Of a stretch of DNA of 64,000 nucleotides, positions 2,311 to 6,710 are shown piece after piece. The DNA is taken from NCBI RefSeq assembly GCF_000142905.1, contig NW_013657674.1, positions 156,709-220,708 of the forward strand. Reading direction: 5' to 3'. Made by a program: the position numbers and the translations under genes. The stretch's first letter is position 1; the number at the start of each line of letters is the position of its first letter. The notes under the pieces are model-generated. The model saw only the letters and a program-made list of their open reading frames with translations. It was not told the origin of the DNA and made no database searches. Origin of the DNA: Thecamonas trahens ATCC 50062. Taxonomy: Eukaryota > Protista > Apusomonadida.

Positions 2311-3813
2311 CTACTCGGCTGCCGGAGCCGGGGCGGCGTCGCCGGCAGGCGNNNNNNNNNNNNNNNNNNNNNNNNNNNNNNNNNNNNNNNNNNNNNNNNN
2401 NNNNNNNNNNNNNNNNNNNNNNNNNNNNNNNNNNNNNNNNNNNNNNNNNNNNNNNNNNNNNNNNNNNNNNNNNNNNNNNNNNNNNNNNNNNNNNNNNNNN
2501 NNNNNNNNNNNNNNNNNNNNNNNNNNNNNNNNNNNNNNNNNNNNNNNNNNNNNNNNNNNNNNNNNNNNNNNNNNNNNNNNNNNNNNNNNNNNNNNNNNNN
2601 NNNNNNNNNNNNNNNNNNNNNNNNNNNNNNNNNNNNNNNNNNNNNNNNNNNNNNNNNNNNNNNNNNNNNNNNNNNNNNNNNNNNNNNNNNNNNNNNAGCG
2701 TTCGCTGCCGCGAGTCACCGCCGCGGTCGTAGCCGCGGTAGCCGTAGACAACCGGCCGGGCGCCGGAGCAAGCGGGCGCAGGCGCAGGCGCATCGTAGCC
2801 GCGGTCGCCGGCCCGGCGCACCGTAGCCGCCGCGGTCGTCGTAGCCGCGGGTTGCCGCCGCGGCTGTAGCCACGGTCGCCTCCACGGTCGTAGCCGCGGT
2901 CGCCGCCGCCGTAGCCACGGTCACCAGCAGGAGGGCCACGGTCGCCGTAGCCGCCGCGGTCGCCGCCGCCGTAGCCGCCGCGGTCGCCGTAGCCGCCGCG
3001 GTCGCCGTAGCCGCCGCGGTCGCCGTAGCCGCCTCGTGATCCGTAGCCGCTGCGGTAACCATAGCCGCCGCGGTCGCCAAAAACCATAGCAAAACGCGGT
3101 CGCCACCGCCATAGCCGCCGCGATCGCCGTAGCCACCACGACCGCCGCCGTAGCCACCGCGATCGCCGCCACGGCCACCGCGATCGCCGCCGCCGCGCGG
3201 GTTGGTCGGGCACTGGTAGGAGAAGTGGCCGAGCTGGCCACAGGCGTAGCACTCGGTGTTGGGCGGGGCCTGGCGCTGGGGCTTGAGAGGGCAGCGCCGA
3301 GCAATGTGGCCATGCTCTCCGCACGAGAAGCAGGCACCCGAGTCAGCAGATGCCGCATCGCCCGTGGCAAACTCGACATTGATGACGCACCGGCCGACTT
3401 GGGCTCCCGTCTCGGCCAGCGCCGCCTCGGCCTCGGCCTCGGTTTCGAACGAGACAAACCCAAACTTGCCGCCACGGGCCACAAAGGTCCGAGTCAGTCG
3501 GCCGTACCTATGCAGAGCGACGAGAGGAGGGTGGCGGGGTAGAGGGGGTGAGTCGGGGAGGTAGGGGGCGGGGTGGGGGTGGGTGGGGGGGGTGGGGGTG
3601 GGGGTGGGGTAGCAGTGTGCTTGTCGGTCATCCCGCGCCCGGGCAGGGAGCAGCAACAGTGGGGTGGGGAAGGGTGGGGGGGGGGGGGGGGGGGGAATGG
3701 GCTGGGGTGGGCACGGCGTACTTGGCAAAGGCGTCATTGAGGTCCCGGTCGGTGACAGAGCCGTCAAGACCGCCAATGAAGAGCTGCACGCGGGGGGGAG
3801 GGGGGGCTGCCAT
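2311..3813 (-). CDS. Glycine-rich RNA-binding protein: RRM, two CCHC zinc knuckles and a (GGYGDR)n tail; intron 3508-3721; frame breaks and an N-gap in the tail
   Basis: RNP2 LFIGGL, RNP1 KFGFVSF, CFSCGEHGHIARRC and CYACGQLGHFSYQC; intron GTACGC..TAG joins AFAK-YGRL. Confidence 0.85.
2820..3190 (-). repeat. Coding tandem repeat (ggcggctacggcgaccgc)n encoding GGYGDR
   Basis: Directly visible imperfect 18-24 nt repeats. Confidence 0.85.
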
Positions 3814-3995
3814 GGGTGGTGGCAGGGGGTGGGGTGGGCGACGCTGCCCCGAGCAGCAGCCAGTCGCCGCCGGCTGGCGGTCGAGCCACAGCTGGCGATG
3901 ACGCAAGTCCGACGCATGCATGGCCGGACGGCGCGGGGTGCCGATCTATTATTCTTTTCCCCGTTTGATGTGCGATTTGCTGAAGAGGTTTATCT

Positions 3996-6347
3996 CTACC
4001 AAAAGGGGAATCCGCTGCCGAGGGACCGGCCGCGGCTTGGCTGGCGGCCCCAGAGCGGATATGCGGGCCGGGCGGCCTGGGCGCGGTGCTGGGATGTCGG
4101 ACGGGATTGCGGCGGGCGGATGACGACGCGCAGAACATCGTCCTTGTACGAGCCCGAGATGTGGCGCTGGGTGGTGTGTTCTGGGAGAACGTACGACTGG
4201 GTAAAGGTGCCGAAACGCCCGTCGCCAAGGCGGAGCATGACGGCATCGAAGAGGGTGGCAGTGTCGGCGGCGGGGCCCCAGCGGGCGGCAAGGCGCGGGA
4301 GCTGGGCACGGGCGACGGCGGCCATGCGCTCGAGCTGTTCGGCCGACGGCTCAACCACGCCACGGATGGTAAGAATTGGCCGGTTGTACGCGTCGGCCGA
4401 GACATTGATGGCTACGTCCCTGCGGTTCATGCCGGGGATGACCGCCGAGATCGCTGTCGCGCCGCCAGCCATCTTGCTCACCTCAAACTGCGGCTCGATG
4501 TCGAGCTCGCGCCACTGTTGCGCGAGCCGCTCGACGGCGCCGGCGCAGAGCTTGTTCAGCTCAGCCTCGAGATCGTAGCCTGCGTCATCCTCGATCGGAG
4601 TGGCGTCGACGACCGGGATGACTCCGTCCTCGGCCTCGGCCAGGTCGTTCTTGGGCGAGGCCGCCACATCGATCGGGATGGCTGCCTCGTTGTCGGAGAC
4701 CGGCTCAAGGTCCGGGATCTGTTCCGGCTCTGGTGTGGGCTGCGGCATGGCAACAGCCTGCACACGCTCGGCGAGCCGCTCTTCGAGCATCTGGATGTGG
4801 CGTCGGAGCTTGGTCTTGACGGCATCGGCCTCGTCTAGCAGGCGCTGGATGTCGGCGACCGTGTCCTTGCGCTGAGCGCGGACCTCGGGCCCGAGGCCAG
4901 TGATGGAGTCAAGCGCGAGCAAGTCACGCATCAGCTCCTCGGTGTAGGCAATTGACTTGGTCTGCATCCGCTTCAGCAGCGCGAGCGTCTGCTCCGGATC
5001 GGCGGTCACATCCTCGAGCTCTGGCAGCGCAGCCGTCAGCTCGTCAAGATGGTGGATGTGGTCCGTGAGCAGCGTGACGTCGTTGTGAATGTTGGAGATT
5101 TTGATCGTGGCCTCATTGTCCGACTCGGAGAGCTCCGAGTGCGGCGACGAGAGTGCTTCGTCGTCGTCGTCGTTGGCAGCGAAATCGTTGTTGTCGTCGT
5201 CGACAGGCTCGCCCTCGATTTCAACAGCAGGCTCGTCCTTTGGAACAGGCTCGGCCTCGACCTCAGCCTCGGCCTCGACCTCGGCCTCCATTTCAGGAAC
5301 AGGATCGGCCTCGACCTCAGCCTCGGCCTCGATCTCGGCCTCCATTTCAGGAACAGGCTCGGCCTCGACCCCAGCCTTGGCCTCAATCTCGGCCTCCATT
5401 TCGGGAACAGGCTCGGCCTCGACCTCAGCCTCGGCCTCGACCTCGGCCTCCATTTCAGGAACAGGCTCGGCCTCGACCCCAGCCTTGGCCTCGATCTCGG
5501 CCTCCATTTCGGGAACAGGCTCGGCCTCGACCTCAGCCTCCATTTCGGGAACAGGCTCGACTTCAGAAACAGGCTCGACTTCGGAAACAGGCTCGGCCTC
5601 GACCTCAACCTTGTCAACCTTGCTTCGCAGCACAAGCTCGGGCTCGTGGACACACTCGGTACTCTCGGATGAGCCGAGTGGCTCATGCGCCTCCACCAGC
5701 CCAGCGACCACTGCCGCGCACTCACGCATCATGTTGACCGCCCGCCGCAAATCCGCCACCTGATGCGGCCCGGTTCCGCCGTGCGCCTGATCGGCCTGAA
5801 GATGGCTGACCCGATCGGCGAGCCGCGCCCACTCGACCTCAAATGCCGTCGTCAGCGCGTCGTGCTCGATCGCCGCCTCGCGCGTCAGCGCCGCCAGGAT
5901 CTCACCAACATACCCATCGATCGCCTCGCTCGACAACTCGTCCACGTCAGAGAGCGTGGCGTGGACTAGCCCACGCACAAACTTGTCTTCGTCGCCGGGC
6001 ACAGTGTCCATAGACCACAGGTATTCGCGCGCGCTGCCGCCGCAAAGCGACGCCGAAAACCCGGGCACAAGCGCGTCGAGGTGCCATCGCACGCGTACCA
6101 CAATGTCGGCGGCTTTGCTCAACGCCACGCGCATCCGCTTGTCGGCCTCGATACCTTTGCTCAGCCGCACATGGTCCCAGAACGCGAGGTACGTCTCCAG
6201 CACTCCGCGCTGCGCCCGGATCATCGCTGCGTCGGCCGTCGCCAAATACGGCGGCTGCGATCGTGGCGTCGCCGCGGCAACCTCCATGCTCTTCTTGCTT
6301 CCACCTAGGGCTTCCATTCGTGTTTCTACTGCCAGCGGACTCGACAT
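3996..6347 (-). CDS. BAG domain plus Hsp20/alpha-crystallin domain co-chaperone with an acidic repeat region
   Basis: BAG-like YTEELMRDLLALDSITGLGPEVRAQRKDTVADIQRLLDEAD (~4810-5095); ACD-like AVIPGMNRRDVAINV...LTIRG...RFGTFTQSYVLPE...ISGSYKDDVLRVVI (~4120-4500). Confidence 0.8.
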   Translation of the reverse strand: MSSPLAVETRMEALGGSKKSMEVAAATPRSQPPYLATADAAMIRAQRGVLETYLAFWDHVRLSKGIEADKRMRVALSKAADIVVRVRWHLDALVPGFSASLCGGSAREYLWSMDTVPGDEDKFVRGLVHATLSDVDELSSEAIDGYVGEILAALTREAAIEHDALTTAFEVEWARLADRVSHLQADQAHGGTGPHQVADLRRAVNMMRECAAVVAGLVEAHEPLGSSESTECVHEPELVLRSKVDKVEVEAEPVSEVEPVSEVEPVPEMEAEVEAEPVPEMEAEIEAKAGVEAEPVPEMEAEVEAEAEVEAEPVPEMEAEIEAKAGVEAEPVPEMEAEIEAEAEVEADPVPEMEAEVEAEAEVEAEPVPKDEPAVEIEGEPVDDDNNDFAANDDDDEALSSPHSELSESDNEATIKISNIHNDVTLLTDHIHHLDELTAALPELEDVTADPEQTLALLKRMQTKSIAYTEELMRDLLALDSITGLGPEVRAQRKDTVADIQRLLDEADAVKTKLRRHIQMLEERLAERVQAVAMPQPTPEPEQIPDLEPVSDNEAAIPIDVAASPKNDLAEAEDGVIPVVDATPIEDDAGYDLEAELNKLCAGAVERLAQQWRELDIEPQFEVSKMAGGATAISAVIPGMNRRDVAINVSADAYNRPILTIRGVVEPSAEQLERMAAVARAQLPRLAARWGPAADTATLFDAVMLRLGDGRFGTFTQSYVLPEHTTQRHISGSYKDDVLRVVIRPPQSRPTSQHRAQAARPAYPLWGRQPSRGRSLGSGFPFW
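5240..5610 (-). repeat. 54-nt coding minisatellite: 5 full copies of AEPVPEMEAE(V/I)EA(E/K)A(E/G)VE plus partial units
   Basis: Visible in both the DNA and the translation. Confidence 0.9.
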
Positions 6348-6710
6348 CGCTGTGTCTGCTGACGATGACTGTTCTCTGGCCTAGCACGCCAGCCCGGTGT
6401 CGCCGAATCTTCGCCGCCTTTTTGTTCCGGTTCTTCCATCTGCCCGAATCCTTCATGAATGCCAGTACGACCCCACGACCTTCGCGAAGTCCCTTCCGAC
6501 GCATCAGTCACCCCCACCCACCGCCTGCCCCCTCTCGACCACTTGCATACCATGTCCTCATGCCCTATCCTTCCTGTCACTCACTACCCGCTCACTGCCC
6601 ACTCATGTTCATCCTTATGACGCAACTGCGCGCCACACGCGCCTCCTGCACCCGACCCAAAATTATCCACTTCTGCCACCACCTCACTGCAAACCACACG
6701 CCACCACCGT

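Follow-up and report, generated by a model that had tools for sequence, protein, structure and literature searches.

The 64,000-nucleotide stretch of the Thecamonas trahens ATCC 50062 genome analyzed here (contig NW_013657674.1, positions 156,709 to 220,708; hereafter the window) carries on its reverse strand a single-exon gene with an uninterrupted open frame (3996–6347), the product of which unites a BAG domain and the alpha-crystallin domain (ACD) of small heat-shock proteins (sHSPs) in one chain. This window protein is a member of a widespread eukaryotic family with conserved BAG-ACD architecture, which probably represents co-chaperones coupling client holding by the ACD to BAG/Hsp70 exchange. 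Its parts are arranged in the order N-terminal helical domain, acidic disordered spacer, BAG domain, variable linker, ACD containing two inserted helices, and G/R/P-rich tail with aromatic end. The N-terminal domain and the aromatic tail are two further family-defining conserved parts that were absent from the first-pass annotation of this locus; the positions given there for the BAG domain and the linker motifs were right to within a few bases.

A conserved family of BAG-ACD proteins

A word search with the whole window protein retrieved one true homologue (P0001), all other matches arising from an acidic repeat; word searches with residues 415–783 only or with a family alignment (A5) returned no matches. 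P0001 is a 650-aa protein encoded on a Logan contig (2.3 kb; run ERR1719230). Its alignment covers 95 % of the window protein at 27 % identity, and it displays the same succession of a conserved N-terminal region, an acidic spacer, a BAG domain (Pfam E 8.7e-9), a linker and an HSP20 domain (Pfam E 1e-7) with insertion. Both proteins end with FW directly before the stop. A two-sequence profile (A1) of the window protein and P0001, reaching from the BAG domain to the C-terminus, was searched against 1.84 billion cluster representatives. It matched 1083 of them at E<=1e-3; this number fell to 287 with a limit of E<=1e-10 and to 56 with a limit of E<=1e-30. Many of the matched proteins are 560–840 aa long, those at E<=1e-10 often about 600–750 aa, and are covered from BAG through ACD in one stretch. 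Among 70 aligned members, Pfam (E<=0.001) detected HSP20 in 67 and BAG in 50.

Taxon names were obtained for about 12 of 30 clusters looked up. Members from Amoebozoa comprise Dermamoeba algensis, Thecamoeba quadrilineata, Cavostelium apophysatum, Stygamoeba regulata, Mastigella eilhardi and Mastigamoeba balamuthi as well as Balamuthia mandrillaris (KAL6074879.1, a genomic record annotated as hypothetical protein), and those from Euglenida comprise Euglena longa and Ploeotia vitrea. Other members are environmental transcripts or contigs, some of them automatically named "HSP20 family molecular chaperone IbpA". Several named members are Trinity open reading frames (ORFs) marked complete, and since these span the fusion, it exists as a single transcript in other species. 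Motif and residue counts given below refer to an 80-member full-length alignment and tail statistics to 146 members.

The BAG domain and its Hsp70-contact residues

Pfam BAG (PF02179) is detected at residues 441–509 of the window protein (E 6.7e-10; 39.8 bits versus a curated cutoff of 23.4) and reaches 42.7 bits when the BAG segment is scanned by itself. Residues 405–783 were modelled with AlphaFold2 (AF2) from a 90-sequence family alignment (mean predicted local distance difference test, pLDDT, 83.6), fragment numbering starting at residue 405. The model contains a helical bundle at residues 408–533 with pLDDT mostly >90 and helices at fragment positions 4–35, 37–76 (one break) and 83–129. 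The BAG-like bundle that had been proposed at ~4810–5095 falls within this modelled bundle (4749–5126) and is thereby confirmed by Pfam as well as by structure prediction. The three-helix BAG fold is also apparent from profile matches to the solved bundles 4hwc, 1m62, 1uk5 and 1hx1_B: with the family profile, solved BAG domains were recovered at E 1e-7 to 6e-5, among them Bag1 from its complex with Hsc70 (1hx1), and a BAG-only profile matched solved BAG1, BAG3 and BAG4 at E 6e-5 to 6e-4. In the latter case, the helix 2/3 motif aligned nearly residue for residue with BAG3 and BAG4 (window protein, EELMRDLLALDSITG..EVRAQRKDTVADIQRLL versus mouse BAG3, EEYLTKELLALDSVDP..DVRQARRDGVRKVQTIL). Family profiles were required for both domains, as single-sequence searches of the PDB yielded weak matches with the BAG segment alone (E about 0.05) and with the ACD segment alone (E about 0.23). 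The Foldseek list for the model of residues 405–783 was filled by ACDs, and the BAG bundle was not matched separately by this fold search.

Residues Glu212, Asp222, Arg237 and Gln245 of hBag1 have been reported to be indispensable for its binding to Hsp70 (PMC6013550). Their counterparts in the window protein, as judged from the alignment and from the spacing (10 and 8 residues), are E470, D480, R493 and Q501; its BAG domain thus retains the full set of four Hsp70-contact residues. Across the family, these positions are occupied by E in 56/80, D in 77/80, R in 72/80 (plus 7 K) and Q in 55/80 members.

The alpha-crystallin domain and its helical insertion

The presence of an ACD behind the linker, as previously proposed, is borne out by family profile matches to solved sHSP ACDs (E down to 3e-17), by the AF2 model (beta-sandwich, strands at pLDDT 92–98) and by Foldseek, the top matches of which are all sHSP ACD cores (E 3e-5 to 1e-3; template modelling score by target 0.6–0.77) from M. 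marinum, S. pombe (Hsp16), pea (Hsp17.7 and Hsp18.1), Xanthomonas (HspA), wheat (Hsp16.9) and E. histolytica (Hsp18.5). Family signatures of the domain are PG..DI, L.I.G.R.P[TS], G.GRFG.F...LP and GVL.V..PK. It is preceded by a helix (fragment positions 189–210; pLDDT 85–97) with W612 being conserved as W in 78/80 members.

An insertion of 43 aa, enclosed by the invariant residues P667 and G710 (family range 30–51 aa, median 41), separates the strand ending ILTIRGVVE from the following strand FGTFTQSYVLP. It forms two helices in the AF2 model (residues 669–690 and 696–708; pLDDT 92–97) and is found across the family, in agreement with the helical insertion of about 40 aa noticed earlier. By its position, the insertion takes the place of the canonical sHSP beta5-beta7 loop, which carries the beta6 dimerisation strand in non-metazoan sHSPs. 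The window protein also does not conform to sHSPs in size and layout: these have 12–43 kDa and a disordered N-terminal region adjoining the ACD, whereas the window protein has 783 aa with BAG domain, linker and helix preceding the ACD.

N-terminal domain, acidic spacer and aromatic tail

The N-terminal domain (~190 aa) is characterized by the family motifs Y..FW, LL..AAE.V.RIR, G.A.E.LW and FVR.LVHATF and is predicted by AF2 to be all-helical (pLDDT 89.4; predicted template modelling score 0.77). Foldseek found no match to it in the PDB at E<=0.001; VIA-align gave a best Z of 7.0 (human cytomegalovirus IE1, 97 aa, root-mean-square deviation 4.0), i.e., below this tool's noise level for helical proteins, and Pfam assigned no family to the region in any of 70 members. 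A degenerate BAG repeat was ruled out (hhalign probability 1.5 %). Look-ups in the Atlas likewise gave no match for the N-terminal domain; for the window protein they yielded only generic structural neighbours of the HSP20 type and one weak BAG cluster (score 0.84).

The acidic spacer ahead of the BAG domain contains a tandem repeat (5242–5611; 54-nt period, 5.5 copies, 92 % match according to Tandem Repeats Finder, TRF; additional 162-nt super-period) encoding acidic EAEPVPEMEAEVEA-type units. It is a recent expansion; homologues have acidic spacers devoid of this repeat.

The last ten positions of the family roughly follow the pattern [G/F]-F-[F/G/Y]-x-D-x-D-[F/L]-[F/W]-W, approximating FFxDxD-hydrophobic-[WF]-W; 76 % of the tails end in W, 88 % in an aromatic residue and 64 % with two terminal aromatics. 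The tail of the window protein (...GSGFPFW) is a degenerate copy of this motif, modelled at pLDDT ~52–56 and undocked.

Other BAG and sHSP genes of Thecamonas trahens

The genome (28.7 Mb, 131 contigs) harbours two Pfam-detectable BAG loci; its canonical HSP20 loci number at least six. A collinear paralogue of 588 aa (contig C36, L013:1561-3324:-) was additionally revealed by searching all six frames with the window protein, matching best in the ACD with insertion (E 4e-8) and the BAG-like segment (E 2e-6) and faintly in the N-terminal region. Its BAG segment is Pfam-negative and has G, D, K and G at the contact positions, i.e., two of the four residues are lost. The paralogue ends 3 aa past the ACD without C-terminal tail and has AAVPVIS (VPV) directly before the ACD. 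The six-frame match runs on for 19 codons past the TGA stop of the paralogue. In a quick maximum-likelihood tree (short search, single-matrix model), the window protein and the paralogue, the latter on a long branch, are sisters (Shimodaira-Hasegawa-like approximate likelihood-ratio test, SH-aLRT, 95), a relationship which points to, without proving, a lineage-specific duplication.

The other Pfam-BAG gene (L002:892-2244:+; contig C48:187088-188440) encodes a 450-aa protein with WW (36 bits), IQ (24 bits) and BAG (50 bits) domains; its acidic C-terminal half, ending ...KTYVININDVDE, contains INI, an IxI-like motif, close to the C-terminus. The organism probably has ordinary sHSP assembly of the IxI type, since one stand-alone canonical sHSP (L007; contig C44:308690-308998 region), ending ...GVLLIRIRKAAAVAAAKPAIKLNFGGNAGH, possesses an IxI-like IKL motif in its tail.

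IPI and IPV motifs in the BAG-ACD linker

The first-pass annotation had drawn attention to AAIPIDV (~4671–4679) and GVIPVVD (~4611–4622) in the linker between BAG domain and ACD. Both are present as described, IPI comprising residues 557–559 (4671–4679) and IPV residues 577–579 (4611–4619) of a disordered segment. In the AF2 monomer, both motifs are at pLDDT <50 and are not docked on the ACD. Two [IV]P[IV] motifs occur in the 96-aa linker in 1.3 % of composition-preserving shuffles.

Conservation of the motifs in homologues, on which their proposed role had been made dependent, fails at family level: [IV]P[IV] is found in the linkers of 6/80 members (shuffle mean 1.65; 6 reached in 3/500 shuffles), and the generic [IV]x[IV] motif occurs at chance level (18/80 versus 18.7 expected). 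The closest homologue P0001 has no [IV]P[IV] in its linker, and the VPV of the T. trahens paralogue does not align with the IPI/IPV of the window protein. The six carriers (P0015, P0101, P0110, P0131, the window protein and its paralogue) belong to three clades, namely the window protein with its paralogue, a proline-rich EVPVP-type clade and P0015. As the motifs are confined to 6/80 linkers in three clades and generic IxI/V motifs occur at chance level, IPI/IPV are not a family feature and represent at most a lineage-specific addition. Such lineage-specific use is possible because of the low frequency of two motifs among shuffles and the weak tails of the carriers, the aromatic tail being weak or missing in 5/6 carriers versus 14/74 non-carriers, with three clades only underlying this difference. 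A linker motif may thus possibly stand in for the aromatic tail in this lineage, an association corresponding to three independent events. An sHSP-type IxI/V tail anchor was searched for as well; no [IV]x[IV] is present in the tails of the window protein, the paralogue or P0001.

Gene boundaries and neighbourhood

The coordinates of the gene and its parts are compiled in Table 1. Alternative starts of the window protein are Met11, Met21 and Met42, and the Atlas record starts at Met21. The downstream neighbour (2715–3917, reverse strand) resembles an RNA-binding protein with RNA-recognition motif, CCHC zinc knuckle and an RGG/GYG-rich region; it ends only 78 bp from the stop of the BAG-ACD gene and is broken by an assembly gap (N run 2352–2696). 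A two-unit heat-shock-element-like sequence (GAAgaTTC) is located at 6405–6412, 58 nt upstream of the first ATG.

Table 1 Parts of the BAG-ACD gene and protein (positions in the window; residues of the window protein)
Feature	Residues	Position	Strand	Basis
Whole coding sequence	783 aa plus stop (3996–3998)	3996..6347	-	Open frame; collinear with 650-aa P0001 over 95 % of length
N-terminal all-helical domain	~37–221	5685..6239	-	Conservation profile, AF2
Acidic linker of low occupancy, with tandem repeat	~222–407	5127..5684	-	TRF, alignment occupancy
BAG domain helical bundle (Pfam core, residues 441–509, at 4821–5027)	408–533	4749..5126	-	Pfam, AF2, profiles
BAG-ACD linker, unconserved, predicted disordered, containing IPI and IPV	534–592	4572..4748	-	Conservation, AF2 (pLDDT <50–60)
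Helix before ACD, ending at the nearly invariant W612	593–614	4506..4571	-	AF2
Alpha-crystallin domain	~615–746	4110..4505	-	Pfam, profile, AF2, Foldseek
Two-helix insertion in ACD	667–709	4221..4349	-	AF2, family alignment
G/R/P-rich C-terminal tail, ending GFPFW	747–783	3999..4109	-	Family tail comparison, AF2

Proposed function and alternative explanations

The BAG-ACD proteins are best explained as a widespread eukaryotic co-chaperone family coupling ACD client holding to BAG/Hsp70 exchange, an explanation we consider probable though far from certain. In this view, the BAG domain would bind the Hsp70 ATPase domain and speed ADP release, and the ACD may hold non-native clients and/or drive oligomerisation. 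The covalent link could then pass sHSP-bound clients on to Hsp70 or bring Hsp70 to assemblies of sHSP and client, a job which animal BAG3 performs non-covalently with HSPB8, HSPB6 or HSP27. BAG3 bridges HSP27/HSPB8 to Hsp70 in a ternary complex allowing substrate transfer (PMC8047445; PMC4753570). The aromatic tail would be the best candidate for assembly or partner docking and the N-terminal domain for selection of client or site; as coupling and assembly elements, both are more likely than IPI/IPV. From the earlier proposal that holdase, docking motifs and Hsp70 recruiter are encoded in cis, the conserved combination of BAG domain and ACD in one chain can be retained, and the motifs as docking device are unsupported (6/80 linkers, undocked in AF2). 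Similarly, it is reasonable to assume a Rosetta-stone type of functional link between an sHSP and an Hsp70 exchange factor, as suggested, since the presence of BAG and ACD in one polypeptide is a conserved architecture (287 representatives; complete transcriptome ORFs), while the route via IPV docking is unsupported.

Several observations weigh against the proposed coupling of client holding to Hsp70 exchange. The Pfam HSP20 match (PF00011) of the window protein is marginal, amounting to 17.7 bits with the whole protein (cutoff 20.8) and covering just profile positions 55–95 (last strands); 21.9 bits are reached with the C-terminal 193 aa alone. The ACD is divergent and departs from the family consensus at V665 (family R), D737 (family G) and R744 (family P), and sHSP-like assembly is not assured, since helices replace the canonical beta6 dimerisation loop. 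In this lineage, the BAG function is liable to decay, as indicated by the loss of two contact residues in the paralogue. AF2 placed neither the IPV motifs nor the tail on the ACD. Furthermore, stress induction of the gene is unsupported, since no three-unit heat-shock element is present upstream of it or elsewhere in the 64-kb window.

As an alternative coupling device, IPI and IPV might dock in the beta4/beta8 groove of an ACD, be it that of the same chain, a neighbouring protomer or a stand-alone sHSP of the genome, forming a BAG3-HSPB8-like module in cis or trans that regulates the hand-off. The infrequency of two [IV]P[IV] motifs in shuffles of the disordered acidic linker would be consistent with such docking, as would the VPV just before the ACD of the sister paralogue (SH-aLRT 95), the availability of at least six stand-alone sHSP loci as trans partners and the presence of exactly two IPV motifs in BAG3 (PMC8047445), and the weak or missing tails of most motif carriers hint at substitution. 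However, a linker motif is missing from 74/80 members and from P0001, generic IxI/V motifs occur at chance level, and the carriers represent three clades only, one of them with the motif in a proline-rich VPVP context, so that the association with weak tails reduces to three independent events. In addition, both motifs are undocked and of low pLDDT in the AF2 model and are not aligned with the VPV of the paralogue. Docking via IPI/IPV is therefore regarded as unlikely.

It is also conceivable that the ACD does not act as holdase and rather serves as an assembly or localisation module, generating a multivalent BAG exchange factor for which the N-terminal domain or a partner of the tail selects client or site, comparable to the UBL (ubiquitin-like) domain of BAG1 or the WW and PxxP regions of BAG3. 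BAG proteins are typically adaptors (PMC4753570), and the conserved helical hairpin in place of the canonical beta5-beta7 loop, the helix and BAG domain ahead of the ACD, where sHSPs have their disordered N-terminal region, and the two additional conserved modules would fit such a role. Yet the core signatures PG..DI, GRFG.F..LP and GVL.V..PK show the strong conservation seen in functional sHSPs, and holdase and assembly roles are not mutually exclusive. Moreover, ACDs themselves bind clients in several sHSPs. A pure assembly role appears rather improbable. An artefactual origin of the fusion, i.e., adjoining BAG and sHSP genes merged by assembly or annotation error, or a pseudogene, could be suspected from assembly gaps (N runs) elsewhere in the window and from the recent tandem repeat in the middle of the ORF. 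It is effectively refuted, since there is no N run within 3996–6347, the frame is intact from the conserved N-terminal domain to the terminal W and stop, P0001 is collinear over 95 % of the length, and the same fusion is found in dozens of independent transcript-derived complete ORFs of other species as well as in genomic records, e.g., that of Balamuthia (KAL6074879.1).

Novelty and implications

Searches of the full-text literature found no paper describing BAG and HSP20/ACD in one protein, and a survey of kinetoplastid ACD proteins (PMC6197667) makes no mention of BAG. Automatic domain tables do show the architecture, e.g., the precomputed Pfam list for P0001. The family thus combines known domains in a conserved, apparently undescribed architecture with two unexplained conserved modules and a putative function in coupling holdase and Hsp70. 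One may tentatively go further and speculate that BAG-ACD proteins are the first described natural one-chain chaperones for hand-off from holdase to Hsp70, present in Amoebozoa, an apusomonad-like genome and Euglenida, and date back to an early eukaryotic ancestor. The aromatic C-terminus might then be a new anchor replacing IxI (binding to the ACD groove or a partner), the N-terminal domain a new fold selecting clients or site, and the BAG3-sHSP system a non-covalent counterpart or descendant.

Client transfer from sHSPs to Hsp70 is known in detail mainly via animal BAG3. A covalent BAG-ACD fusion, conserved across hundreds of protist sequences with the Hsp70-contact residues retained, provides independent evolutionary evidence that coupling of sHSPs to Hsp70 exchange is selected well outside animals. 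The BAG-ACD protein offers a compact single-protein system for studying the hand-off in vitro, the N-terminal domain and the aromatic tail are concrete targets for new chaperone interactions, and the family represents an unannotated component of proteostasis in Balamuthia, other amoebae and euglenids.

Comparison with known systems

The window protein shows all tested properties of BAG domains; with sHSPs it shares the ACD fold and not the size, layout or IxI tail, and its resemblance to BAG3 is limited to the BAG domain and the two IPV-type motifs. As in the BAG3-HSPB8/HSPB6/HSP27 system (module of chaperone-assisted selective autophagy, CASA), a BAG domain with the Hsp70-contact set and an sHSP ACD would be united in one functional unit, the helix 2/3 region (..LLALDS..VRAQRK....IQ) closely resembles that of BAG3 (..LLALDSV..VRQARR....VQ), and two I-P-[IV] motifs reside in a disordered segment. 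In contrast to BAG3, the link to the ACD is covalent, WW and PxxP regions are lacking, and an ACD with helical insertion, an aromatic tail and an extra N-terminal helical domain are present. The IPV motifs of BAG3 are located N-terminal to the BAG domain (residues 96–98 and 208–210; PMC8047445), whereas those of the window protein are C-terminal to it and not conserved in the family. The layout of BAG3 is more closely approached by the second Pfam-BAG protein of T. trahens (L002), which combines WW as in animal BAG3 with IQ as in plant BAG5-7.

Canonical sHSPs such as wheat Hsp16.9 (1gme) and Xanthomonas HspA (3gla) share with the window family the ACD beta-sandwich, the signatures PG..DI, G.F.R.F.LP and GVL.I..PK and a flexible C-terminal extension. 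They differ from the family, which has a helical hairpin of ~41 aa for the beta5-beta7 loop and a terminal aromatic cluster in place of the IxI/V tail, and from the window protein, which is 4–5 times longer and carries a BAG domain upstream of the ACD. BAG1 and plant BAG proteins (UBL-BAG, IQ-BAG) are likewise modular adaptors in which a three-helix BAG domain of the C-terminal type with the E/D/R/Q set is combined with a specificity domain; in the window protein, by contrast, the partner domain is an ACD, and the BAG domain is internal instead of C-terminal.

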